This document shows, one piece after another, positions 16,108 to 55,284 of a stretch of DNA of 64,000 nucleotides. Positions within the stretch are counted from its first letter, which is position 1; every line of letters begins with the position of its first letter. This stretch comes from Anthoceros angustus (lineage: Eukaryota; Plantae; Anthocerotophyta). The stretch covers positions 434,001 through 498,000 of the forward strand of contig MU008192.1 of assembly GCA_010909165.1 (NCBI GenBank), in the 5' to 3' direction. Under the pieces are notes generated by a model that was given only the letters and a program-made list of their open reading frames with translations, was not told where the DNA came from and did not search any database. The translations under genes were made by a program, and so were the position numbers.

Positions 16108-16341
16108 ATGGTGTGCCTAAGCTACTTGCACCCACTTCATCTAAGCACCCTTCCTTATCAACTTGTAGCATGGTGTGCCTAAGCTGCTTGCACCCACTTC
16201 CTCTAAGCACCCCAACTTCCTCTAAGCACCCCAACTGGTAACATGGTATGCCTAAGTTAAGTTACTTGCACCCACTTCCTCTAAGCACCCCAACTGAACT
16301 CAGGATGCTTAGTAACGACATTCTTATAAATGTGTGTCCAT
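16108..16341 (+). repeat. Dispersed repeat family copy with internal tandem amplification
   Basis: Three iterations of GGT(G/A)TGCCTAAG..CT(A/G)CTTGCACCCACTTC..CTAAGCACCC, ending TTCTTATAAATGTGTGTCCA as in the other copies. Confidence 0.88.
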
Positions 16342-18060
16342 GTGGCTGCCCACCAACGGGACAGCGAGCAAGGTGGGTCCCAAGTCGTCGAGAGGGGGCC
16401 ACAGTTGCAAGCCTGGAGAGAGCACGCCAGAGGCTGGACCAGGCATCGCAGTAGATAGAGAAAGAGGCTGGTGCGATTCGGAAAGCTTGGATGTAAGGCC
16501 GAGCCAAAAGCCATGAACCTGCTCCTTTCCTCGAGCAAGATGAAAACGGGCTCGAGCAGTCATAGGGGGATGGACGAATCCTGAAGAAGAACCAGCTACG
16601 CCTGCCAATATGGCTTCTCCATGAGGGAGGATTGAAGCCCGCGAAACCTAACCTCGGGGAGCGAAGCAAACCCAATATGCGCAAAGAGAGAGCCATATGA
16701 GACATAATAATTTATATGAGACTCATACTCCACAATCCTAAACGCGATTGGGTTGAGGAAAGAAATGCAAAATTTAATCTCCCTTATAATTTGCGCTAAA
16801 TGCATCGATCACGAGTTGAACCCGAATTCTATGCTTGGATGACTGTGTGCTTGGATGACACGAGTTCTACCTGTTGGAACCAGCTATACAGATGGACGGC
16901 TCCTCACCTTTATGCTATCTAAACTATAATCTGTGCGAACTGCGAAGCATCCTTTCCGCCCTCCATCCTCTGTGTGGTCCTTTCTGAGCTAAATAGAATT
17001 CTTTTTCTTCTTGTGTTGGGCGCAGCAATGGGAGGCAGCACAAAGGGCGTACCTTCCCCAACGACACACAAAGCGAAAACGCCACGGAATGTGCGTCCTT
17101 AGGGGAGTCATTGCGTATAAGGGTCATGCGTGTGGGGTTTCTCATGAACCAGCCTTTGGCCGACGGGGGTCCCGCGTCCTTAGAAACCATGTAGAGCTGG
17201 CAATCTTGGCCGCAATTGACCGATGGGTTTCTTGACAAGAGCCTGTTGCGAGCGTGTGGTACTGGAGTCCTCTGCAGGGTAACTCATAAGGTACGTCATC
17301 CTGTCAAGAAGCCGGACCGGCCAGCCAGCCAATCGAGGGCAAGGCAACTATGTAGGCACAGGCTCCTGAAAACTCTCATCAGGGCCCCCTCAGACTTCGT
17401 GTTGCTACTTGTCCATTGTGGGTATAAAGTGGTGGATTCCATGAATCCATGGAAGGTTTCAACTATCTATGCGGATTCTAAAAGCTTGAGCTCAAGATCA
17501 GGGAGTGCACGCCTCCTTGTCCTGCTTTTGTGTCGTAAATCTTTTACCACCCAAAGAGATGTGGCAACAGGAAAGAGGACTTTTGGGTACCACTGTAAGC
17601 ATCTGTTACGGTAGACTTCTCAAATCGCATGCTTAGCATCGTCAGTTCAGGAAACTTGCGAACTGGCCAATGGTATGGGTAGGTCAAATATGGGCCTTCT
17701 TGGTGGGTGCTAGGCAAAAATGCACACAAATCGATGGCGGATTCTACAAAGCTCAAACAACCATCAACGGCCGAACGCAGGCTTCATATGAAGTTGGCAC
17801 GGGTAGCAGGTAAGGAGATGGTAAGGAACGGCAACTTCCCTATCAAACCTCACGAGGCACCATTCTTCACTGTTCCCATACACAGGAAGACAAATCAATA
17901 TTTGGGTGGCTCGTCTCCATCGTCTTCACCTCGGTTGCGCACTTCCGGGACCCGCAGGTGCATTTCTTCGTGCTGTGGAAATACCATTTCCCGCGATAAG
18001 CTAGGCTTGACAGTTTTACACTCGCCTGCAGAACACTCACTGAACAGTAGGTTGTGAGGT

Positions 18061-18893: not shown

Positions 18894-20673
18894 TTAGCAT
18901 ATAAATATACGGCGGTCAGGCACGGCATCCACAAGATTGAAATAGTTGACATCAGCCACCACGTTACCAAAATCATCTGTTGCACCCATTGCAAACCTTC
19001 AGTCGGAATCAGAACAATCTGGCAGACGAAGCTGATTCAGCCCTAGGCATAAAACACTCACACTCAGATATTGTCCGCACAAGGTCCAGATATTCAGGAA
19101 TAAGCTCCTTAAACAGTACACCCGCAGGATTCGCGTCTAGTATAAACAGAGCACCTGCATGCCAGTTTGAGAGCAAGGGGTAATGGAAAGACAGAAAGTA
19201 CAACAAGCATGACAGTTTCATACAAAGTTCTTATCAATACCTGGAGCAAGCCACTGTGCTGAGCCGGTTGCATTCGAAAAGCCAGGATAGGGAGCTAACC
19301 ACAGAATATTTCGAAGATCCATACTCTCATCAAAAGCCACAGTTGACCCTGATTCAGAGTAGCTAGTCAGAACTCCAGTGCAGCCTGACTTCGGGGTATC
19401 AATGACGACAAGCAGACAAAAAATAGTTCGATGCTCAAACTCAACTGCACATAGATTGCCTAACATGATAGAGCTAAATGCTCATACCTGTTTGGCAATA
19501 CCCAAGGTTGTAGGGAAAGTTCTTCTGATCTAAGGCTGGATATTCACGGGCATGAAACCTGCACAAGAATAGGTCTAGATTCATGTCAACCAGCTGTTCC
19601 GAAGAGCCTTCCGAAAAGCCTGCTTATTTCACAAGGCACTTACAGAATTCCCAGTCTTCCAGTGTCAAAAGCAAGAAAAACATGACCATGAAAAAGGTCA
19701 AAACGGCTTAATGATACATTGAAGCCGGCAGCTGGTGCAAGCACATTGATGGCCTGGAAGAGCGTTGCCATGTATGCATTCAGCTCCTGCAATGGTGAAG
19801 GAATCCCATGAGGTTCTTCTCACGGCTCAAAGGCTGCGAGCACCCAGAAAGGAGGAAATGCATAAAACTTACACTTTCATAAAACCTCAGGCCGTAGTCA
19901 TACTTGGTCAGCGAGCAACGGTTTGCGTACGATCCTTGTACATCTGGGATCTGCAAAGGAGATCATAGAGCCGCAAAGTCGGAAGTCAGGAGACCTAACT
20001 TGGGCTTCCCAAGCTTGCCAGATAGTGAGAAATCACTGGGAGCAGAAGTCACCGGAGGAGAGGATATTGCAGTGACAGTCTGTCAGGGAGAGGCACAAAC
20101 ATCAATTTTTTCAGGACTGAGAGCGGTCATAAAGGCTGATGGATCTCCTCCGAATTGCACTACTCTCCTGGCCAAGTCCATCACAGCTCTCGGAGGCCAT
20201 CGAATAAGGCGTTCCAGAACCCGATGAGATCCCTGTCTGGCCCTCATGGTGCCATAATGTTTTCCTACAGGATCCTTGAGTTTAGTCCACGGCAGATCCA
20301 ACCCATCTTCGTCAACGAACTCTGTCATAACCCGTCGTTGCAACGGGACGAGCAGACGGACACAGGATAACAGGTCCAAAGACCTTGAACTGTCTACAGA
20401 AGCTGCCAATTCTGCTCCGCTGAACAAAGCAATCAACTGGGATGTGCATTTTCTAGCAACCTCAGATTGCTGTGCAGAAGAAGACAACGTGGCAGAAGAC
20501 TTGGAAGCAGAGTATTGTTGTGCAACCCTTGGCAATCCAGGAATCTTTGGGACAGTGTTTCCTGGCGAGCGGACGGTCTGAAGGCGGGGTAACCATGCTT
20601 TGGTCGCTGCCTGTGCATCAAGAGGCAAACGGCAAGCAAGCAACATCACCAGGAGGATAGAAATCTGATGCAT
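18894..20673 (-). CDS. Conserved uncharacterised plant protein, multi-exon, N-terminal signal/anchor
   Basis: Spliced exons join in frame: MHQISILLVMLL.. ; IPDVQGSYANRCSLTKYDYG ; FDLFHGHVFLAFDTGRLGIL|FHAREYPALDQKNFPYNLGYCQT ; MDLRNILWLAP..WLAPG ; LIPEYLDLVRTI ; DDFGNVVADVN..IFIC*. Junctions are canonical GT-AG. Confidence 0.85.
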
Positions 20674-20834
20674 ATTAGCAACTTCAGCGCATCCCAAGAC
20701 TCTGTGATCTGCGGCGCAGATGCTGGACGGGCTTATCAGTGCTGAGATCGTTTCCACCGATCCCTTTTCACCCAGAAAGCGCACTACTGCTTTTTAGGTT
20801 AGAGGCCATCGTTTCCAGCAAGTGCGTCCAGCCC

Positions 20835-22392
20835 ATGTCCAGAATGACGGAATCCTCGGCTTTGGAGCTGTGCTTGCCATGGCTAACAGCCCAAGAGCTA
20901 GCTTCGGTGGCCTTGGTGAACAAAGCCTTGGCTGCAGCAGTGAGGCAGGTGACTTGGGCACGCTTAGAGGACGTTGCACAGGGCAGAGAGAAATGGAAGG
21001 TTCCCATCCTCAACCAGGTGGATGCGTGTCGCTATCCTTGCTTTCAGTATACAAGACATTCCCTGGTGTTCTCGCCTTCACATCTCGAATCCAGGAATCC
21101 ATGGGGCTCACTGCGAGCTGAGCCATCCAGAGTAGTCTCTGACTCGACTGCTTCATCTCCTGATTGCCATGGAGTCGGCATGCAGAACGAGTCAATGGGG
21201 AAGCTCGCAGAATATTCCAGATCAGCAGAGGCAGATAAACACCGGGAATACGATCTGCTATCCTGCAATGGAGATGCGGTTGGGTGCAATTGCTCAGAAG
21301 ATTGCGCATTGGATCAAAGGAATGATGTGACGCCATTTGCTGGAGGTTTGTGCTTCAAAGGTGCTCTTTGCTTAGTACCAGTTCACTGAACTCGCAGCTC
21401 TGATGTTTACTCTGTAGCTCATGCGTCCTGAGGCCACTGTCTTTGCAGGTAGCTCAAGAGAGGATTTTAGAATCAAGGGGACTGTAAGCGGAAAGAGGAA
21501 GGTGAAAGAGGAGGCAGAAATGAAGAGGGACTACGGGGCTGTGCCCTCCTGTGAAAGTCTCTGTAGATGTGGAAGACTGATCGGAGGCGAACTGGCTTAT
21601 GACAGGAACTCCAGGCTGCGAGTACTAACAGAATCTTTGGAGACAGAAGACCCTTCCGCTAGAAGTAGCCTCCCTGACGAGATTGACAGGGACCTTGATG
21701 AAGATAGTAACGACGGTTCAGAGATTGACGAGGGCCCTCCGTTGGTGATGGAATGTGGAAGTGGTTGCTCTTGCAGATCTTGGTGTGCCCTCAGGGTCTC
21801 GCAACACGGGCTGGCGGTTCGAGTGAGCCTTGTGAGAAGCCTCCTGAAAGGGTGGTGCCTTCATGCAGGCCAGTTTATTGCAGCGGGGTCATTTGTGTGT
21901 GAATATGCAGGTTAGCGCATGTACGTTCTGGTGACAACCTTATGTAGAGTGCTCTGGACTGGAATGATTGTCTCACGAATGGTGCTTTTGGCAGGTGAGC
22001 TGCTGCCCACTAAAGAAGCTAGACAGAGGCAAAAGGTTTATGAAGAAGCTCTGGCACCTGGGAGAAGACGCCATGGCCCTGCTCTCCTGGTACTCAAGGA
22101 GCACTTACCATCAGGTCGGGCTTGTCTGCGGTTGAATGTGGACGGCACGAGTATAGGGAATGTGGCTAGGTTTATCAATCATTCATGTGATGGCGGAAAC
22201 TTATACCCTTGCTTGATTCGGGCTACTGGTTCTTTCATTCCAAAGCTAGGCTTGTTTGCTAGACGAAACATACTGGATGGAGACGAACTATCGTACTGCT
22301 ACGGTGTAGATACGACCGACGGTGCAGCCTGTCGCCTGTGTTTTTGCGGATCTCCTGCTTGCCAGGGAATGCTACCGTCAGAAGCTACCTGA
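20835..22392 (+). CDS. SUVR3: SET-domain histone lysine methyltransferase, SUVR3/SDG20-like
   Basis: Exons 20835-21345, 21449-21910 and 21995-22392. Motifs: LPWLTAQELA, pre-SET Cys clusters, FVCEYAGELL, ALLVLKEHLPSGRACLRLNVD..GNVARFINHSCDGGNL, ELSYCYG and post-SET CFCGSPAC. Confidence 0.92.
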
Positions 22393-22532
22393 TGAAGTCT
22401 TGTGTCTGTTCACAATGCGATGAAGTCGTGACACTAAGACTCGGAAACAAGAGATTTTTCCTCCTGTATTGGCATATGCAGGTGGGTGATTCTATGGAGA
22501 AGCTCAATGTCTCCTAGCCCGAAAACTCACCA

Positions 22533-22660
22533 AAGGTCCCTGCCTGCTCTGGCTTCCAATCTCAGGGAGGCTGCTTGTAGCGGAAGGGTCCTCTGTCGCC
22601 GAAGATTCTGTTATACTCGCAGCCTGGAGTTCCTGTCATAAGCCAGTTCGCCTCCAGTCA
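22533..22660 (-). repeat. Inverted partial copy of SUVR3 exon 2 (matches 21578-21696)
   Basis: The reverse complement reads GGAGGCGAACTGGCTTATGACAGGAACTCCAGGCTGCGAGTA-TAACAGAATCTTCGGCGACAGAGGACCCTTCCGCTACAAGCAGCCTCCCTGA, about 90% identical to the coding exon. Confidence 0.95.
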
Positions 22661-23339
22661 GCCTTTTTATCTAGGAAGGCTTTTCACAGGAGGCAAATCT
22701 TCCATATGTAGATAGATCGTAAACCAAGCAGATGTCTGTGGGTACATTCACCTGCAGTCGGTCGAACTGCTACATTCACCTACACTGGAACTGAGCACTG
22801 ACGGCAAACATATGTAGATAGATTTATAGGGTAGATAAGTGCGGGGGCACGCCCCCCTCGCCTGGTGGGTTGTCCCCTGCCGCCTCGGGGTAGATGGGAT
22901 TTCCCATATCGTGCCTTTTATAAAGTCTTAACGTCTCCCCTGATTTAGACCAAGCCAGTCTTGACGTGATCCGAGATGTGCTGCACCCTCGGCTTACCCC
23001 CCAGAACCCAGGATCCTCTTCGACTTATCCATATTCCCCCTTCCCCACTAGCCCCAGCATTAGATCTACTCCTGCACACTCTCTTCGAAAAACAGACTGT
23101 ACTGGCCTCGCTCGACGAGGCCCTCCAACAGTGGCAGCGCATCTCGGATCAAGCTCGCAAGGACTTCACAGATGGCCTGCAGTCCGCTTCTGAGGCACTC
23201 CGTGCCGACTGAAACCTATTACTTGATTTAGTTTATTGGCAACCATTCCCACCAAAAACAAAATCTGATGTTCTTGTACGTTATTGTCTTACATCTAGAC
23301 ACTTGCAAAAGAGCAGAGAGATCATGTGTTTACAGGCCT

Positions 23340-24132
23340 TCTACTATTCACAAGTAAAGAGGATGCAAAGCACAAACTTGAGATTCATGGGTGTGATGGT
23401 CAAGGCTATTATGCGGTTTTGCAGACTCGTTTGTGCATCCGTGGTGGGTTTCCTACCGGCTTTGGACAACGGATTGTGGAGTAACATCTTACACTGATAC
23501 TACAACAACCAGGTTTGCTATCTACCCTCACTCAGTGCTTCCACACCTGCTAATCAAGACCGTATAATATACGAAATCGTAAAACACCTCCATGGTCTGG
23601 CGGAGTTCCGGAAAACCGGTGTGATTTGTTTTGGCCCCTTGCTCAAGGGTGACGCGGGTTCAAACTCCTCCAAAATACTTCAAATCTGTAAAGTCTCGAT
23701 ACTCTTTAAAGTCCGGATCAGTTTTCTATAGGTTGTGAAGCTGTCCGTAGCTTCAGAGAATTAATTTGTTGGTGCCTAAGTTTCTACTCCTAGTACATGA
23801 AACTCTTCTGCAATGCGGTATCTACGCATATTCACGACAACAGGACTACGGGCGGGTGCTGAAGCCGAGGCAGGACTGTGGGCTGGTGCAGAAGCTGAGG
23901 CAGCCTGGGTGCTCAATGTCTCGGGCATCTCCGTGCCTTCCCCGCCAGATGTCGGTGTTTCGGAGCTCCCCTCTTCTATCCTTGATTCTGTTTCTGATGG
24001 AAAATCGTACTTGGCAACCCTAACAGCGTCCCGGCCATTTCTCTGCGACTCGAATAGCCAGACGTTCACAGTTGTGCTTACAGCAAGTAATCCGAGGAAG
24101 AGACCGCAGATTAGCCTCCTCGTTGGGGCCAT
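23340..24132 (-). pseudogene. Type II membrane protein (glycosyltransferase-like topology) with an in-frame TGA
   Basis: Exon 24132-23797 is exactly 112 codons (TM helix plus S/A/P-rich stem). Exon 23725-23573 is exactly 51 codons with TGA at 23660-23662. A probable third exon starts at 23499. Confidence 0.45.
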
Positions 24133-24388
24133 GTCCACACCAGGTCGATGGATGTACTCTGAAGTTATGGGGTGATAACTTATAGACGTGGCCGAAGGAT
24201 GCAGCAGATGTGCAAACTGCGTGATGAAGGTCACAGCGATGGCACTGAGCTGCTGGGGAGCGTAACCTGGTGGTGAGGTGTCTTACCGTAGCTGAAGGCT
24301 GGTAATTTTAGGTCACGGCCATGTTCACTGGCCATCATAGTTTCGGTCACACTCCCACTGTGGCAAGCGAGGAGCTCCATCGGTTTAG

Positions 24389-24614
24389 CTTCCATGATGG
24401 TGATCTTGACTGGGCATGTAAGCATAATGTTCTGTTCTTTGAATCCACTGCCTGCATACTTCCTTCCCCAATCAGAGTGCTGACAGCAGACCCTGAGCCT
24501 TCCATGATGGTGATCTTGACTGGGCATTGTTAAGCATAATGTTCTCTTCTTTGAATCCACTGCCTGCATACTTCCTTCCCCAATCAGAGTGCTAACAGCA
24601 GACCCTGAGCCTTC
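24389..24614. repeat. ~110-bp tandem duplication covering the BAC2 stop codon and 3' UTR
   Basis: Units 24389-24498 and 24499-24610, with a few substitutions and small indels. Confidence 0.93.
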
Positions 24615-25589
24615 TCATATGCTACAAAAATGGCACCATTCACAATGAAGGCACGTGTCAATGTAACTCCCAGCCCACGCCATAGGAACGCATGCCCCTC
24701 CGCCTGGATACTCTGCCGCAAGCAGTCCAGGCTACTGGAGTACCTCAGGTTCGACGAGTCCTGCGCCTGCATCCTGCTCTTGATCACATCCACCGGGTAA
24801 ACTGAGAGCCAGGACATGACCCCGGCAATGCCACCTGCAACAAGCTGGGTCGTCAGACTGGACTCCCCATGCGTTCGGGAACCCGGAGAGAGCACTTCCC
24901 GGGCAAACTCGTTGGTGGCGAAGTAGACGCCATAGCTAGGCGCGTCTCTCAACGCCGTCAATCCAAAGCCCCGGTACATGCCTCTCCATCCCTCTGTGCT
25001 CAAAGTCTTTCGGATAACAAACAAAGGTCCCGTTGCACTATGCTGGAAAGAAGACATGGCAAACAAAGGATGCGGTGTGGCTGCTTGTAGTTGCAGTCGG
25101 ATCTTAACAAGCTCTACAGGTGTCATAAGCACACACTGGACGGAGCCTGCTGCCGCACCAGCTAGCCACACCTTGGAATAGGAGAGGGGAGCATCTGAAG
25201 AGGGATCCGACAGTACACGCTGGCAAAAGGACTTACTTACAAAAGTCACGGCATTCTGTGAGGCAGTCAACGATAAGAAGGCAGCAAGGAAAAGGTGCGC
25301 GAGGAATCTGCTCAATGAGAAAAACGGCTCGATGTCTTACCTGAACAGCAGCGGTGGCCAGTGGCGATAGCAGGCCTTTGAACAGAGCCTGGGGACCCTC
25401 GGAAGTCACAAGATGTCGGAACAATCCAGAAACCGTAGGAGCACTAGATGCAGAGCGTCGCGGTTGCTGCAGCTGGATTCTAATTGTGTCCAGAGGATGG
25501 CCAGTAATCACTCCAGCCATGCCTCCCACTCCTCCAGCCAAGAACTCCCTCACGAGAGTCGATCCACCAAATTCTGGCCAAGTCTCCAT
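24584..25589 (-). CDS. BAC2: Mitochondrial basic amino acid (arginine/ornithine) carrier BAC2-like
   Basis: Exons 25589-25341 and 25255-24584. METWPEF..REFLAGGVGGMAGVITGHPLDTIRIQLQQ; three carrier signatures (PLDTIR, PVELVK, PVDVIKSRMQ). Confidence 0.92.
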
Positions 25590-26212
25590 TTCATTATTTG
25601 TCCTCATTGCAAGTCCCGTTCACGATCAAGCAAACCAGAATTAGAGGACTCTGTAACCACAAGTAACGTCCCTGTTGCGAAATCAATCGTAAGCAAGCTC
25701 CCTCGCACTCCACAGGACAACCCCGCTCTTCATATACCAGAGAGGATTCCGTACCTTAGAGAATATCAAATCCTCGCCCCTTCCAATCTAGTCTACATTC
25801 GCGCTAACAACTTACATATCACAATTCATGAAGCATTCTCGGTCCTACAGATGTGAGGGAATTCGTGGTGCAGGAGCAATTGATCGAGAACGTCCTCCAT
25901 AGCAATGGAATGCGAATGCGAAATTTGTTCAAATTCCAAAGTGACTGGTGAGCAGAAACGGGAAGGTGGAGAGGATTGAGTCCCAATCTACTGCCTCTGC
26001 TGTGGCAGTCTTTGTCACTAATGGTCGGAGCTGAATCAACACGCCACTCCGCAGACGGCGAGCAGCAATGGCAGGCGGGCTCCAGCACCACACGTTCCAC
26101 TGCTGGCGTAAAGAGAGTGCTTAAAGAGAAAGCCGTACAATAGGAGAAGAACTTTATGTAGTTTGGCTGAGACTCTCCTACCAACGGATCAATTTAGTCC
26201 CTGCCTGCCGAC

Positions 26213-26291
26213 TTTTAGTCCTTCGATTCCCTCAAAACTTTTAAGGGAATCGAAGGACTAAAACTCGAAAAGGAATCGAAGGACTAAAAAA
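26213..26291. repeat. Perfect 20-bp inverted repeat (fold-back) with an extra copy of the right arm
   Basis: TTTTAGTCCTTCGATTCCCT (26213-26232), an 11-nt spacer, then AGGGAATCGAAGGACTAAAA (26244-26263). A further AGGAATCGAAGGACTAAAA follows at ~26271. Confidence 0.92.
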
Positions 26292-42320: not shown

Positions 42321-42953
42321 ACAAATCTATGGTTGGTACAAATCACTTGGTCACGTGATGAACTGAAAGTTGAATGGAGTTCGATCTCTACTTGAATTGT
42401 GAGTTCGTAGAAGTCCTTAAGTAATAATCTTGAATCCTCCCTGTGATATTAAAACCGAATGTTTTACATATCCTAAATTAAGGCTGTAGCTCTACTAGTG
42501 TCGTTGGATGGCACATGCTTATTAGCTTCCACAATTTGGTGATTTGAGAAACGTCACTCTCTTACATTCAATGGAAACATTGCTGCCTATTATATAAATT
42601 TAATGTACTCTCGAGCTTTTATACAAATCATGCTTGGACATCAATATTTGGAAATTCAGATTATAATTATACTACTGAAACCTATAGAGTTTTAGTTACA
42701 TAAAGATATGTAAAATAGTTACGTGCAAATAATCCTTTGCATGTTCTACTGAGTCTTACATACTCATTAATTATTATTTATGGCCACTTTTCACTTGAAA
42801 ATTGAAAAGTGTTGCACACGAGTGGTTACTTAATTTGACGATCATGTAATTTTGAGGTTATCATTCCAATTTTTATAGATAAATATAAATACATCAATAA
42901 TGTATCCCTTGACTAGGTATGGTTATGGATCACTTTTCACCCGAGAAAGATTA

Positions 42954-43176
42954 GAAGAAGAAGAAGAATTTTATTTAAGTCCACTAAGGACGGATTTCCG
43001 TCATGGGACTTGGTACTTAACAACTTATACCATGGTATGCCTAAGCTACTTGTACCATGGTATGCTAAGCTACTTGCACCAAGGGGATTTCCATTTCCTT
43101 TAGGCACCCCATCTAAGTACCGATCCAAGCGCAGGATGCTTATACATGTGTGTCCATTTGGCCTAAGCCATTTGGA
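42954..43176 (+). repeat. Dispersed ~220-bp repeat family, full copy
   Basis: (GAA)n then TTTTATTTAAG..GGACGGATTTCC..GGCCTAAGCCATTTGGA; colinear with 8556-8770. Confidence 0.92.
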
Positions 43177-46851: not shown

Positions 46852-49800
46852 ATGTTGCAGCACCCGGCCTCCTTGGGAGGCTGGAGCCGGCTACAGTACC
46901 GTAGGCCGGATGTTCTAGTCCTCCGGCAGAGTGGTCGCCCACGCTGCCTGCTGCAGAGCCCCGCGCAGATACGAATTCTGAAGAGGGTCTTGGGGAATGG
47001 GGATGTGCAGTTGAAGCGTGCTACAGTGGAGCTGGGTGCAGAGCAGCCCAATGAGGCCGGGGGGCAGATTTCGGCTCTTCTGTCGCAGTTGGTGGGTGTG
47101 TTTGGATGCCTGGTGGTTTGCGTAAGCAGCGGGGCCGATGCCGGGGTTATGTTGGCAGGTTCAGGTCGTGAGAATGGTGTGTGCCAGGCAGGTGGGCCTT
47201 ACGAGGCTGCTGGGGCTCCCCCGCTTGTGGCTATGGCAGAGTGGAGCAGCATTAACCTGCCGTTACCGCTCTGTATGGACACTGGGATGCCTGATGCTGA
47301 TGGTGAAGGAGGGCAGAGCGGGTTGCAGAGGGAGGTGGCTGCGTTGCCTGTTCTGCCGAGGTACAAGAGGACGCTGTTTCATGAACCTGGGTTGCACTAC
47401 CGGGTTCCTGGTCCGGAATTTGGGATCCGGGAATGGGAAGGTGAGAGTCTGGGGGGCATGAATTACGGGGAAATTGTAGCTGGACTGCGGGACAGCAGGG
47501 AGGGGAGGCAAGAGATGTTCACACGTGATGCCTGGATGGGGATGATGAGGCTGCAGCAGTATAGCAAGTACATTGATAGTTTGGAAGATCAGGAGGCCAA
47601 GTGCAAGGAGTGCGTACGCAATCGTAGGTTTGTGGCATTTGGTTGGATGGTGTTGTGTTGTTTCTTCGTCCTTTGCATTGTGTCGTTTGGAGGTTACAAG
47701 AATTTGGTGGGCTGTCGCAGGTTGCTAGAGCAGGTGTGGCAGACGGTGTCAAATGTACTTTCCTTTCTTTGACCTATCCTGCTGTGTTTTTGCTTATCTG
47801 TGAGATTTGGATGGTGTGCTGCATAGTTCGTGAGGTCTTCGTTGATGTGATGTGGCTTTCAGAGAGTCTTGTGCCAGTTGCCAGTCAGTTGCTTCTGTTG
47901 CTTGGGCATGTCAAGTTGCTTACGGAGTAGAAAAAGCCTGTGTAGAAGCAAGGCACTCTTCGTTAGGTTGCATGTTGGAAATGTGGCCAGCCTGCTGCTG
48001 AGCCTCAAGGTGTCGCTTGTCATGCATGTAGTGATGGCACCAAAAAACCTTTCGAGGTTCTGGCTAGTTTTTGGGTCAAGTGTTCTGAAGTCTGGCTGCT
48101 TTGATCTCCCGGTGTCCGCATATCGACCTGCTGCAGGAGTACTATGATCATGATGGCAGGTGATGACGCCGAACTTTGAACTGGACATGTGTTCTCTTGT
48201 ATGCTTTTGTGCTCAAGCTTCAAATAAATTGTTCTCTTATGCAGCTTCTCTCAATCTCAATGGGCAGGGGAGTTGTATCGGGCACTAAGAGGAGCTGGAG
48301 GTCTTCTGCACACGAAAACCGAAACGTAAGGTGTCGCACAGCGGAGAGAAATTTGAATACCTTCTGACTCTGAAGGACGCGGGTAACACGTATCTAAGCT
48401 GGGCTTGCAGGTATAAAGCGGCAAAGGGCATGGTTGCAAATCTTGGTGACAAATACAGCTCGTTTCTGAATCCTTTCGAGTATCGGCTTGCTCTTCATAG
48501 ACCAATTCCTTCTGAACTGAAGTATCTTGCGTACCAATATATTGGCATTGGCGTAGAGGTGGGTGTGTTCAAGAGTGTCTATGGTGTCTCCATGTTGTAG
48601 ACAGGACTCGAGTCTCATGCTCCAGTTCCTGTGACTGTGTGCAGCTTGGAAGGCGAACCTCGAGTGGCTTCACAATTGTGGCCCCTTTGCTGGCTCTCCA
48701 GCCGAGGAGGTAAAACCGGTGACACCATGTCTAGACGTTCTTGGTTGTTCCTGCTTCTAGGAGGTGAGGTTGACATGTTCCACTGCAGGCTGGCATCTTG
48801 GCAGGAGAACAGTTATTGAGTGTGGACGGCTTGGAACTGGATTCTTTCACCAAGGGGAAGTTGTGGCATTCTTAGGCCCCATTGGCTCTACAGTGAGTAC
48901 TCGTCTTTGCACTCTGCAGTTCTTCGATACAAGCCATAGTCATCTATTCCATTGCTTGGTTTAACATAGAGCCTCAGCACATCTGATTCCCTGGATTCCT
49001 ACTGTTGAGCTAGAAGAGATTCATCCGTGAAGTGCTCTGACTGATCTTGCTCAGGTGGAAGTAGAGGTGGCAGGACCGACGGGGTGCGCACGCTACAGAT
49101 AGAAAGGCGACCCTGCCTTTACCACCCCTGAAGATGAAGCTATTGGATGCAGGAGCCGGCCAGCTTGGTCAGACTACACTACTTTACGCATGAAGGCACC
49201 AAGCAAATGGCAGCTGCGATCAGAAGGAGAAGCTCTCGGCGTGGATGGCTACAGTAGGTTTCTTTCCTGGCCTATGGGTACACAGCTCTTGCCATTCCAT
49301 CTCTCACTCCACAGCACATATTCCACTTACTTGTCTTCCTGTGCTGCAGTTTTGGACTTGCGGAACAATCCTGGTGGTGTGTTTGAGGAAGCAGTAGCCA
49401 TGGCTGTGAGAAAGCTCCTGCTTTGCTCTCATTTTGCCATGTTGTTGCTTACGGAGTAGAAAAAGCCTGTGTAGAAGCAAGGCACTCTTCGTTAGGTTGC
49501 ATGTTGGAAATGTGGCCAGCCTGCTGCTGAGCCTCAAGGTGTCGCTTGTCATGCATGTAGTGATGGCACCAAAACCTTTCGAGGTTCTGGCTAGTTTTTG
49601 GGTCAAGTGTTCTGAAGTCTGGCTGCTTTGATCTCCCGGTGTCCGCATATCGACCTGCTGCAGGAGTACTATGATCATGATGGCAGGTGATGACGCCGAA
49701 CTTTGAACTGGACATGTGTTCTCTTGTATGCTTTTGTGCTCAAGCTTCAAATAAATTGTTCTCTTATGTTTGTATGCAGCTTCTCTCAATCTCAATGGGC

Positions 49801-52110
49801 AGGGGAGTTGTATCGGGCACTAAGAGGAGCTGGAGGTCTTCTGCACACGAAAACCGAAACGTAAGGTGTCGCACAGCGGAGAGAAATTTGAATACCTTCT
49901 GACTCTGAAGGACGCGGGTAACACGTATCTAAGCTGGGCTTGCAGGTATAAAGCGGCAAAGGGCATGGTTGCAAATCTTGGTGACAAATACAGCTCGTTT
50001 CTGAATCCTTTCGAGTATCGGCTTGCTCTTCATAGACCAATTCCTTCTGAACTGAAGTATCTTGCGTACCAATATATTGGCATTGGCGTAGAGGTGGGTG
50101 TGTTCAAGAGTGTCTATGGTGTCTCCATGTTGTAGACAGGACTCGAGTCTCATGCTCCAGTTCCTGTGACTGTGTGCAGCTTGGAAGGCGAACCTCGAGT
50201 GGCTTCACAATTGTGGCCCCCTTTGCTGGCTCTCCAGCCGAGGAGGTAAAACCGGTGACACCATGTCTAGACGTTCTTGGTTGTTCCTGCTTCTAGGAGG
50301 TGAGGTTGACATGTTCCACTGCAGGCTGGCATCTTGGCAGGAGAACAGTTATTGAGTGTGGACGGCTTGGAACTGGATTCTTTCACCAAGGGCGAAGTTG
50401 TGGCATTCTTGCGAGGCCCCATTGGCTCTACAGTGAGTACTCGTCTTTGCACTCTGCAGTTCTTCGATACAAGCCATAGTCATCTATTCCATTGCTTGGT
50501 TTAACATAGAGCCTCAGCACATCTGATTCCCTGGATTCCTACTGTTGAGCTAGAAGAGATTCATCCGTGAAGTGCTCTGACTGATCTTGCTCAGGTGGAA
50601 GTAGAGGTGGCAGGACCGACGGGGGTGCGCACGCTACAGATAGAAAGGCGACCCCTGCCTTTACCACCCCTGAAGATGAAGCTATTGGATGCAGGAGCCG
50701 GCCAGCTTGTGGCTTACATCAGACTACACTACTTTACGCATGAAGGCACCAAGCAAATGGCAGCTGCGATCAGAGAAGGAGAAGCTCTCGGCGTGGATGG
50801 CTACAGTAGGTTTCTTTCCTGGCCTATGGGTACACAGCTCTTGCCATTCCATCTCTCACTCCACAGCACATATTCCACTTACTTGTCTTCCTGTGCTGCA
50901 GTTTTGGACTTGCGGAACAATCCTGGTGGTGTGTTTGAGGAAGCAGTAGCCATGGCTGTGAGAAAGCTCCTGCTTTGCTCTCATTTTTGCCATGTTGTTA
51001 CCATGTTTGCTACCAGTACCTGGGTTTTCTTCAAAGATCGAAGCTGAAGCAAATGTGCTCCTCCGCAACAGGCTCTGTGGCTGGACTGCGAGAACTGCGA
51101 TGTAACGGAAACGGTCCGCAGCAACGTAGCGGACATCGAAGACCTTGTGTACACTGCGGGAAAACTTCCGGTTGGTTATCTTGGTCCAAGCTTTTTGCTG
51201 TTCTGCCGATTTCTGCCTCAGTCTGTGCAAGTTAGGTCAAGCATCCATGCTCTGATCCTAAACCATTCACGTGACTGCACGCAGCGAGAAATATTTTCTA
51301 GGCATCCGGGAGTGCTGTCACATGCTCCACTCGTCGTTATCACAAATCGCAGCAGCGCTAGTGCAAGCGAGGTAGCCAGTTGGCTCAAGTCATGTCAATT
51401 GCAAACTTCCAATCAAGGCCATCTCCAGAGCGTCGCTTTTCGTATTCTAACCACATTCATTCTGCTGGATGCAGGTTCTGACAGGAGCTCTACACGACAA
51501 TCATAGAGTGGTTACAGTTGGTGAGAAAACTTTTGGAAAAGGCGTTGTGCAGGTCAGTGGTGTCATGCAGTGAAGCTGAAGTTGATGTGGAGTGTATCCA
51601 GACCAGCCTAGGTTGCATCGTATTGCAGCATTCCAGAAGGTTGAACGCTGTTGTGGCATCTTGCTGTTGTGGCATCTTGCTGCTAGTAACCTACCGTGCA
51701 TCACTCACAGTACTACTTCCCGATGGACGATGGCAGCGGGCTCAAGCTGACAGTGGCCAAGTATTTAACGCCTTCCCGCTACGACATCTCCAGGCAGTAA
51801 GCTTTCCACCACCAAACCCTACGCAAGGTGACAAAAGTATTGGTATGAGAGCTTGGTCTGTGCGTCTCGGTGGCCTCTGATCCTTGGGTTTTGCTGGACA
51901 TGACCTGGCCGCAGGGGTGGTTTGGAGCCAGACCGTTCGTGCCACGACTATCCCCACGGCACGGCAACGCTCTCAGACCAGTGCATTAAAGAGGCTCTGA
52001 CGAGCCTGCCGTCCATGGAGGGAAGGGTCGGGGGCGGGCCTAGCCTCCCGCTGCCCTACCGCTGGACGCCTCCCCAGGAGCGGGGGGTTTGGGCTGTGGG
52101 CTCCTACTAG
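46852..52110 (+). CDS. Divergent CtpA-like C-terminal processing protease (S41, PDZ), ~15 exons; 5' end uncertain
   Basis: Spliced path: NRRLLEQVWQTVSN|EYYDHDGS|FSQSQW..|YKAAKGMVANLGDKYSSFL..YIGIGVE|..VAPFAGSPAEE|AGILAGEQLLSVDG..LRGPIGST|..AYIRLHYF..|ILDLRNNPGG..|..LVVITNRSSASASEV|LTGALHDN..TFGKGVVQ|..DGSGLKLTVAKYLTP..|GLEPD. The catalytic Ser and Lys motifs are intact. Confidence 0.9.
47915..50999. repeat. ~1.5-kb intragenic tandem duplication inside the CtpA-like gene
   Basis: Copy 1 is 47915-49443 and copy 2 is 49444-50999. I found only 1-9-bp indels between them; copy 1 exons are frameshifted and copy 2 exons are intact. Confidence 0.95.
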
Positions 52111-52322: not shown

Positions 52323-55284
52323 TACATGTGTAGGAGTGTGGGGGGGACGGACAGGTGCATTGTTCTGTGCTGTATCGTGTATTTTGTTTTGGTGTCATAA
52401 AGAAGTGTGGTTGCCGGGAGATGAGTGTGCCCCCAGCTCGTGCATGCACCAGAGTGATGGCTGATCTGGAAAGCAGTCAAAGGGCTGCTTCAGAGTCCAA
52501 GGAGCAGTCCAGGCAGGTAGCGAGGCGTGCCGGTGGCAGCTGCAGGGGAGCCGGGGATTTCCCTCCTGCACACGGTGCCTCCTGCGGCTGCACACGACTG
52601 CAGCAGGCAGTCCAGTCCTGGCCTGGCCGGAGCCTGAGCCGAGGCCGAGGCGGAGGCCCTGCCCCGCCCCCGCCCCTTTGCCTAGTTTTGCGTTGTTTTG
52701 CTTTGTTTGGATGGCGCAAAGTTGTTCAGGCAGGTACACAACCGTGGAGGTGGTGGTGTGCGCTCTGCTGCTACTGCGGCTACAGTCGCCCTTTGTTGCC
52801 GCTGCTCGACTCTTTGTGTGTGCTGCTGCTGTTGGTGCCGTTGCCGCAACATGAGTTGTTGGGTGTGTCAGGGGAGGGGCGGGGGCCGGGGAACAGCCTC
52901 GACGCAGCAAGCAACTGGAGCCTGCCTGCGTCCATGGTTTGTGCAAAAGCGTGGACATACCCAAATATCCAAGCTCCCCTCCACCAACAGGGGCAGTGCA
53001 GAGTGCAGAGTCCAGAGCGACGCGGTGGAAGGTGGCAGCGTGGATACTGTATAAAGGTACCCTCTCACCCGCCGGGAACCCGCTGCAGCAGATTCCAAGC
53101 AGCCGCTGCTGTTGTGCGCACCGAGCGCGTCCAGCCCATTTGTGGCCATCCGCTGCCCTGCCTGCGCTGCGCTGCGCTGCTCCCAGTGCAGTGCAGTGCA
53201 GGGGAGGATGAAGAAGTGGGGATGCGATGCCACCTGCCCGAATTTGGGGACTTCTGTTGTTCTCGGCCCTCGAGGCAGATTCCCGTCACCTCTCCCACCC
53301 CCACCACGCGCGCCAGTTGCCAGTTTTAGCAGCAACCAGCATCGCAGCCGCAGGGCGTAACGGAGCAGGGCGGCCAGGTGTTGGGACCGTTCGCCTTTTG
53401 CTCCGGGCACCTTGTGTGACACCGCCCACCCTCCTGTCAGACGCAACCCCTTCCCCTTCCCCTTCCTTCCCGTTCCCCTTCCCCACCGCCTTGCGTCCCT
53501 GTCCGCTCCCACGTACTTCCTCTGTAGCTCCTCCTGCCCTGCTTTTCATTTCCACGATTCCCTCCTCCAGGGCCAGGGCAAGCCATGGCTTGGCGTTGGA
53601 GAACGTCGCGTACCCTGGCCTGCGGCAGCTTGCAGGAGGAGGGACGGTCGACACTACCACCACCGGCCGTGGCTCGGCGTTCGACACATCATCCATTGAA
53701 CTCCACATCATCCATTGAACTGAACTGGAACAAGCTCTCCCCTCCCATACGGAGATATGTATATATATACATGTAGGAGTGTGGGGGACGGACAGGTGCA
53801 TTGTTCTGTGCTGTATCGTGTATTTTGTTTTGGTGTCATAAAGAAGTGTGGTTGCCGGGAGATGAGTGTGCCCCCAGCTCGTGCATGCACCAGAGTGATG
53901 GCTGATCTGGAAAGCAGTCAAAGGGCTGCTTCAGAGTCCAAGGAGCAGTCCAGGCAGGTAGCGAGGCGTGCCGGTGGCAGCTGCAGGGGAGGGATTTCCC
54001 TCCTGCACACGGTGCCTCCTGCGGCTGCACACGACTGCAGCAGGCAGTCCAGTCCTGGCCCTGGCCGGAGCCCGAGCCCGAGGCCGAGGCGGAGGCCCTG
54101 CCCCCGCCCCCGCCCCCTTTGCCTAGTTTTGCGTTGTTTTGCTTTGTTTGGATGGCGCAAAGTTGTTCAGGCAGGTACACAACCGTGGGAGGTGGAGTGG
54201 TGGTGTGCGCTCTGCACCTGCTGCTACTGCGGCTACAGTCGCCCTTTGTTGCCGCTGCTCGACTCTTTGTGTGTGCTGCTGCTGTTGGTGCCGTTGCCGC
54301 AACATGAGTTGTTGGGTGTGTCAGGGGAGGGGCGGGGGGCGGGGAACAGCCTCGACGCAGCAAGCAACTGGAGCCTGCCTGCGTCCATGGTTTGTGCAAA
54401 AGCGTGGACATACCCAAATATCCAAGCTCCCCTCCACCAACAGGGGCAGTGCAGAGTGCAGAGTCCAGAGCGACGCGGTGGAAGGTGGCAGCGTGGGGTG
54501 GATACTGTATAAAGGTACCCCTCTCACCCGCCGGGAACCCGCTGCAGCAGATTCCAAGCAGCCGCTGCTGTTGTGCGCACCGAGCGCGTCCAGCCCATTT
54601 GTGGCCATCCGCTGGCCTGCCCTGGCCTGCCCTGCGCTGCGCTGCGCTGCTCCCAGTCCCCAGTGCAGTGCAGTGCAGGGGAGGATGAAGAAGTGGGGAT
54701 GCGATGCCACCTGCCCGAATTTGGGGACTTCTGTTGTTCTCGGCCCTCGAGGCAGATTCCCGTCACCTCTCCCACCCCCACCACGCGCGCCAGTTGCCAG
54801 TTTTAGCAACCAGCATCGCAGCCGCAGGGCGTAACGGAGCAGGGCGGCCAGGTGTTGGGACCGTTCGCCTTTTGCTCCGGGCACCTTGTGTGACACCGCC
54901 CACCCTCCTGTCAGACGCAACCCCTTCCCCTTCCCCTTCCTTCCCGTTCCCCTTCCCCACCGCCTTGCGTCCCTGTCCGCTCCCCACGTACTTCCTCTGT
55001 AGCAGCTCCTCCTGCCCCTGCTTTTCATTTCCACGATTCCCTCCTCCAGGGCCAAGGGGCAAGCCATGGCTTGGCGTTGGAGAACGTCGCGTACCCTGGC
55101 CCTGCGGCAGCTTGCAGGGAGGAGGGACGGTCTGGCGACAAACGTCGTACTACCACCACCGGCCGTGGCTCGGCGTTCGACACATCATCCATTGAACTCC
55201 ACACATCATCCATTGAACTGAACTGGAACAAGCTCTCCCCCTCCCCATACACAGGGAGATATGTATATATATATACATGTGTAG
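52323..55284. repeat. ~1.45-1.5-kb tandem duplication of GC-rich low-complexity sequence
   Basis: Copy A is 52323-53767 and copy B is 53768-55273. TACATGTGTAG recurs at 52323 and 55274. Differences are predominantly small indels. Confidence 0.93.

Follow-up and report, generated by a model that had tools for sequence, protein, structure and literature searches.

We identified a SUVR3-like gene on the plus strand of a 64-kb window of Anthoceros angustus DNA (the window being the whole stretch that was analysed), and an inverted copy of part of its second exon in its own 3' flank. The gene has three exons, and its introns of 103 and 84 nt carry GT..AG ends and are both in phase 1.

20835 to 21345, plus strand: exon 1 of the SUVR3-like gene, from the ATG at 20835 to the donor GT at 21346, with the open reading frame and splice sites read from the sequence.
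21449 to 21910, plus strand: exon 2, in phase 1 at both ends, with the pre-SET cysteines, an acidic insert and the start of the SET domain.
21995 to 22392, plus strand: exon 3, with the remainder of SET and the post-SET region, ending in the TGA at 22390-22392.

Protein and profile searches were run exon by exon, with the exons unjoined, and the closest comparison locus was found on a syntenic hornwort contig (L001, from Logan SRR33208241). In Pfam, exon 3 scores 39.5 bits for the SET domain (E 8e-10; cut-off 22.4). Its identity to the L001 orthologue is 70%, and its named matches are SUVR3 proteins. Exon 2 gives a Pfam Pre-SET match that lies under the curated cut-off (E 2e-5, 25.4 bits; cut-off 29.1) and aligns with the SUVR3 proteins of Riccia, Diphasiastrum and others. 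The cysteine patterns GCxCxxxC, CxCG, ECGxxCSC and, at the C terminus, CFCGSPAC align with those of named SUVR3 proteins, and the motifs NHSCDGGN and ELSYCYG (NHSC and the catalytic tyrosine region) can be read in the translation. The LPWLTAQELASV motif in the N-terminal part of exon 1 aligns with SUVR3 proteins and the L001 orthologue; an N-terminal LPWL..ELA motif is shared with the named SUVR3 matches, which come from Physcomitrium, Selaginella and many angiosperms. As judged from these features of its sequence, the gene is a SUVR3/SETMAR-type SET-domain histone methyltransferase gene, SUVR3-like. An earlier note on this DNA had already called it SUVR3, with which both the Pfam SET match and the named relatives agree.

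Purifying selection on the gene is strong, with dN/dS of 0.05-0.15 against the L001 orthologue. Given this constraint, and the retention of NHSC, post-SET and other motifs, we conclude that the SUVR3 gene is not disabled. The acidic insert of exon 2 contains a 16-nt direct repeat, its copies 42 nt apart (21679-21736; EIDRD and EIDEG codons), which suggests that this insert grew by in-frame slippage.

The inverted repeat has one arm within exon 2 and the other behind the stop codon:

21545 to 21696, plus strand: arm A, the original coding copy, which encodes exon 2 residues PSCESLCRCGRLIGGELAYDRNSRLRVLTES... and then a portion of the acidic insert.
22533 to 22693, minus strand: arm B, an inverted copy that is derived from arm A; its minus strand reads sense-like, and its plus strand is antisense to exon 2.

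A repeat search returned two adjoining inverted pairs, 21573-21624 with 22614-22665 (52 nt, 94%) and 21626-21677 with 22562-22613 (52 nt, 90%). Gapped local alignment joins these and extends the repeat to 21545-21696 against 22693-22533; its 146 aligned columns hold 15 substitutions (11 transitions and 4 transversions), giving 89.7% identity, with four small indels. An extra block of about 13-14 nt is present in arm B, and a protein-level echo of arm B, seen by tblastn, reaches to about 22706. In a self-BLAST of the window the two arms pair with E = 6e-38, and no further copies of the repeat occur in the 64 kb, such that arm B is a single extra copy. Arm B begins 140 nt past the stop, and about 840 nt of unique, conserved coding sequence lies between the arms.

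These results bear out what the earlier note had described, an inverted copy of exon 2 sequence that is about 90% identical, carries an insertion of about 14 bp and starts about 140 bp after the stop at 22392, and they make the repeat slightly larger (21545-21696 against 22533-22693). That note had also placed the copied segment in the long insert of the pre-SET region. This holds for the part that covers the acidic insert but not for the first half of the segment, which encodes a conserved Cys/GGxLAYD motif. Fold-back artefacts, such as fold-back chimeric reads, generate inverted repeats in long-read assemblies. However, the arms differ by the 15 substitutions and four indels, the unique coding sequence separates them, and both are internal to the window, which makes an assembly artefact scarcely credible, in line with the earlier judgement that a simple assembly echo is improbable.

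The polarity of the repeat can be read from the protein. Arm A encodes the motif CxCGR..GGxLAYDxxSRLxxLT, which is common to the SUVR3 proteins of liverworts, mosses and lycophytes and to the syntenic hornwort contig; its carriers include Riccia (P0125), Diphasiastrum (P0123), a Logan transcript (P0124), a EukProt transcript (P0130) and the L001 exon. As this motif is conserved in the SUVR3 of other land plants and of L001, arm A is the ancestral copy. Read on the minus strand, arm B gives the same peptide, but interrupted by one stop codon and by a 1-nt deletion that shifts the frame, indicating that arm B is a dead, non-coding fragment. There is no minus-strand open reading frame over arm B. 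L001 was also tried as an outgroup for polarizing the individual differences between the arms, and was dropped since synonymous sites are saturated and the DNA cannot be aligned reliably there.

The orientation of arm B and its place directly behind the gene would fit the last remnant of a tail-to-tail inverted duplication of the whole SUVR3 gene, all but about 150 bp of which would have been deleted or eroded. Such a duplication predicts about 700 nt between the stop codon and arm B (inverted versions of exon 3, of intron 2 and of what remains of exon 2), whereas 140 nt are available. Moreover, we found no trace of exon 1, exon 3 or the rest of exon 2 outside the gene, and no other SUVR3 remnants, at the DNA or protein level, in the 64-kb window. 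We therefore regard a whole-gene remnant as improbable.

Comparison with L001 places the repeat in a region that has been rearranged. The contig is collinear with the window for a DUF538 gene, an unknown minus-strand gene, SUVR3 and a mitochondrial-carrier gene (Mito_carr), and it carries in addition a JmjC/RIOX1 gene between SUVR3 and the mitochondrial carrier. This gene (L001:6231-7932, minus strand; Pfam JmjC_2 and WHD_RIOX1) is of JmjC/RIOX1 type, is convergent with SUVR3 and lies about 220 bp from the SUVR3 stop. No JmjC/RIOX1 gene is found anywhere in the 64-kb window, and the 2.2 kb from 22393 to 24594 show no similarity to L001 and contain no open reading frame recognizable by Pfam. 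Thus, the intergenic region that holds arm B was rebuilt in one of the two lineages.

The inverted repeat is absent from the L001 SUVR3 locus. Likewise, none of 15 further metagenome SUVR3-like loci has an inverted repeat between exon and 3' flank (0 of 16 together with L001). The presence of the repeat in related species had been proposed earlier as a check; at the syntenic hornwort locus the answer is negative, with the qualification that synonymous sites between the window and L001 are saturated (pS 0.68-0.75). Since the arms themselves differ by K of only about 0.11, the repeat arose long after the split from L001; the saturation also means that absence from L001 sets only an upper age, and that the copy is comparatively young. 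Searches for nearer relatives gave little. A word search with the exon 2 and exon 3 reading frames returned no relative above 70% identity, an exhaustive search of representatives with exon 2 returned nothing below E 1e-30, and a metagenome scan for SUVR3-like genes reached at most 63% identity. In a profile search, separate exon rows were combined with full-length relatives, and no full-length hornwort protein was recovered; exact look-ups of the exon 1 reading frame and of that of the DUF538 neighbour found both unrecorded in the collections. None of these searches turned up a protein from a transcript of the gene or from a close relative.

The sequence next to arm B bears short direct repeats:

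22703 to 22823, no strand assigned: direct-repeat patch, in which a perfect repeat of 15 nt starts at 22703 and 22809, and a second repeat, of 14 nt, lies at 22743 and 22771.

This patch is compatible with a patchwork repair junction or with slippage. Microhomology is limited to a trivial 2 nt at one repeat junction. Short direct repeats adjoining arm B could also be taken as signs of a transposon (Pack-MULE, Helitron or MITE-like) that captured the gene fragment and landed behind SUVR3, and a dispersed repeat family does exist elsewhere in the window. Against such a capture, arm B is bracketed by neither terminal inverted repeats nor a target-site duplication, arm B and its flanks are single-copy within the 64 kb, and the source is as near as about 900 bp, a distance more usual for copying from a local template than for capture by a transposon. 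We consider transposon capture very unlikely.

Given the small size and single copy of the insert, the lack of transposon features, the direct-repeat patches and the remodelled intergenic region, we favour a templated insertion, and think it rather probable that arm B is a lineage-specific, inverted product of break repair that is now decaying as a non-coding relic. Templated 'filler DNA' insertions occur at double-strand-break repair junctions in plants. In the proposed sequence of events, a break would have arisen in the region between SUVR3 and the mitochondrial-carrier gene, which on this reading was remodelled in this lineage, and would have been repaired by a templated filler insertion or a template switch, during which about 150-175 bp of SUVR3 exon 2, some 900 bp away, may have been inserted in reverse orientation downstream of the gene. 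The exon copy would have stayed under protein-level constraint while the downstream copy decayed. Accordance with filler DNA extends to several properties, as filler tracts are short, often inverted, drawn from a nearby source and single-copy, with patchy repeats at their junctions and an otherwise rearranged surrounding region. Filler tracts are, however, typically shorter than 150 bp, unlike the SUVR3 copy. We infer a repair origin for arm B, and its neutrality.

The stop codon and arm B are separated by the following stretch:

22393 to 22532, plus strand: stop-to-arm stretch, 140 nt, a succession of UG-rich, A-rich and U-rich sequence with a possible poly(A) site near 22468.

When an RNA of the unspliced genomic stretch 21449-22720 was folded, arm A and arm B paired from end to end, in the minimum-energy structure as well as in the centroid structure. 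For the duplex of arm A and arm B alone the predicted energy is -246.5 kcal/mol, and it includes a perfect stretch of 42 bp followed by a 1-nt bulge and then 12 pairs. An RNA covering both arms could thus fold into a stem of roughly 150 bp, and the predicted structures uphold the earlier proposal that exon 2 could fold against its downstream copy. Hornworts encode homologues of DCL1, DCL3 and DCL4 (PMC11799827). With arms that fold together and these enzymes in the lineage, the physical premise of a self-hairpin is sound. If RNA polymerase II ran at least 300 nt past the stop, exon 2 would pair with the relic in an imperfect duplex of roughly 150 bp, which DCL enzymes could dice; on the templated-insertion reading, any such dicing would be a by-product of structure.

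A functional self-hairpin would go further, with arm B lying in the SUVR3 3' UTR or pre-mRNA and leading to dicing by DCL3 or DCL4, or to nuclear retention, as a selected form of negative autoregulation. Besides the strongly paired arms and the DCL homologues, the 2.2 kb to the next recognizable gene would leave room for a long UTR. Sequence signals on whether arm B would fall within the transcript are ambiguous. No AATAAA-type hexamer occurs between the stop and arm B, the only match being a TATAAA at 22919, and a first, strict poly(A) heuristic found no site. A relaxed and uncalibrated version of the heuristic puts its top site near 22468, upstream of arm B, and weaker ones near 22673 and 22820. 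A poly(A) site near 22468 would exclude arm B from the transcript, and the heuristic weakly suggests one. The absence of arm B from L001, the only related locus reached, also counts against a selected hairpin. Furthermore, in plants, arms of about 100 nt are enough for a hairpin to silence strongly, and the tight purifying selection on the gene suggests that any silencing here is weak or absent. The Anthoceros genome paper makes no mention of small RNAs, a literature search for hornwort small-RNA data gave nothing usable, and no Rfam families were found across 19000-26000.

By eye, a consensus-like splice donor can be placed at CAG/GTGGGT (22480/22481) and an acceptor at TTTTCACAG/G (22689/22690). 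These splice-like sites bracket arm B and could mark a candidate 3'-UTR intron of 209 nt, or may be due to chance. The region of the donor at 22480 resembles the exon 2 donor (a 19-nt direct repeat, 79%).

Arm B on the plus strand is antisense to exon 2, and a separate plus-strand transcript over arm B, or a read-through RNA, might pair with the SUVR3 mRNA in trans. However, upstream of arm B there is only SUVR3 itself, with no other promoter-like features or open reading frames, and the sole TATAAA lies downstream. A trans-acting antisense RNA therefore appears highly improbable.

Divergence between the arms is distributed unevenly around a conserved stretch:

21583 to 21637, plus strand: substitution-free core of 55 nt, with its partner at 22602-22655, broken only by the 1-nt deletion in arm B.

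The core includes the 42-bp perfect duplex, and the codons it spans are the conserved ones for GGELAYDRNSRLRVLTES (p of about 0.012 in a permutation test). Differences reach 27% in the outer 37 columns (21545-21582) and 4.6% in the remaining 109 (Fisher p = 4e-4, in a post hoc comparison). Divergence that tracks codon conservation is unexpected for a neutral relic, so that gene conversion or selection on pairing is possible. The edge of the insertion may be an error-prone, mosaic junction; alternatively, the core may have undergone gene conversion afterwards, or the duplex may be under selection. If pairing were selected, differences that preserve it as G:U would be favoured on the plus strand. 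No such excess is seen among the 11 transition differences, of which seven give G:U and four A:C (p = 0.27), and thus pairing is not visibly protected. The mildly unexpected core speaks for a functional self-hairpin and the lack of a G:U excess against it; with the position of the predicted poly(A) site, the evidence leaves such a hairpin unlikely. The more specific form, in which an antisense copy in the 3' UTR (or in its putative intron, 22481-22689) would pair with exon 2, be diced or retained in the nucleus, and have its core maintained by selection as cis self-regulation, seems to us quite unlikely.

The templated insertion, which we prefer, leaves arm B beside its parent gene, and this arrangement can be compared with known systems. 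Natural long inverted-repeat silencers include rice Lgc1 and Arabidopsis PAI1-PAI4, and in work attributed to Jia and colleagues (2020) the inverted CHS repeats of soybean are reportedly processed by DCL2 and silence the gene. As in these natural silencers, such as soybean CHS, gene sequence at the SUVR3 locus lies tail to tail, and read-through would give double-stranded RNA. The silencers, however, involve whole genes or kilobases of nearly identical sequence and have demonstrated silencing, whereas the SUVR3 repeat spans 150 bp at about 90% identity and the gene is kept functional. Inverted repeats in 3' UTRs (plant MITEs and human inverted Alu pairs) can give rise to siRNAs, translational repression or nuclear retention. 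They share with the self-hairpin idea an intramolecular duplex that involves the 3' UTR and acts as a post-transcriptional brake, but the MITE and Alu pairs have both of their arms within the UTR and come from transposons present in many copies, whereas the SUVR3 repeat has conserved coding sequence as one of its arms and is not multi-copy in the 64 kb.

In the model of Allen et al. 2004, as outlined in a later account (bioRxiv 10.1101/2024.07.25.605110), young plant MIRNA and hairpin-siRNA loci originate by inverted duplication. The SUVR3 repeat resembles such loci in that a fragment of a protein-coding exon is inverted, the fold-back is long and near-perfect, and the parent gene would be matched by any small RNAs produced. 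The extended similarity that the arms keep to the parent corresponds to the 'smoking gun' stage. The repeat differs in that the model has two copies with a short loop at a separate locus, while SUVR3 has one copy and the parent exon 2 itself serves as the second arm; and its loop of about 840 nt contains SET-domain coding sequence, in place of the short loop of the model. The locus thus has the inverted arms similar to a coding gene that mark hairpin-siRNA and proto-MIRNA loci, and does not stand apart from its parent as those loci do.

The SUVR3 inverted copy adds one example to a familiar class of structural events. Should it prove to be no more than a scar of repair, it would count as an ordinary structural variant. 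If arm B were transcribed with the gene, the locus would amount to a naturally occurring version of an RNAi hairpin construct, set in an endogenous chromatin-modifier gene; and if cis self-regulation were true, that gene would have a built-in, self-limiting hairpin. Hornworts are a lineage with poorly known small-RNA biology.

Several other repeats occur in the window. A tandem duplication at 24389-24614, with a unit of roughly 110 bp and 95.7% identity, immediately follows the final exon of the mitochondrial-carrier gene, which is on the minus strand, and is probably within the 3' UTR of that gene. The dispersed family (2335-2458, 8548-8775, 16154-16346 and 42946-43176), whose members are 75-93% identical and occur in both orientations, is probably a small transposon and has no relation to the SUVR3 repeat. 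Sequence units of about 1.5 kb are duplicated in tandem at two separate places, 47915-50999 (98% identical) and 52329-55280 (94%), and a local palindrome of 59 nt at 26209-26267 is 91.5% identical to its own reverse complement.
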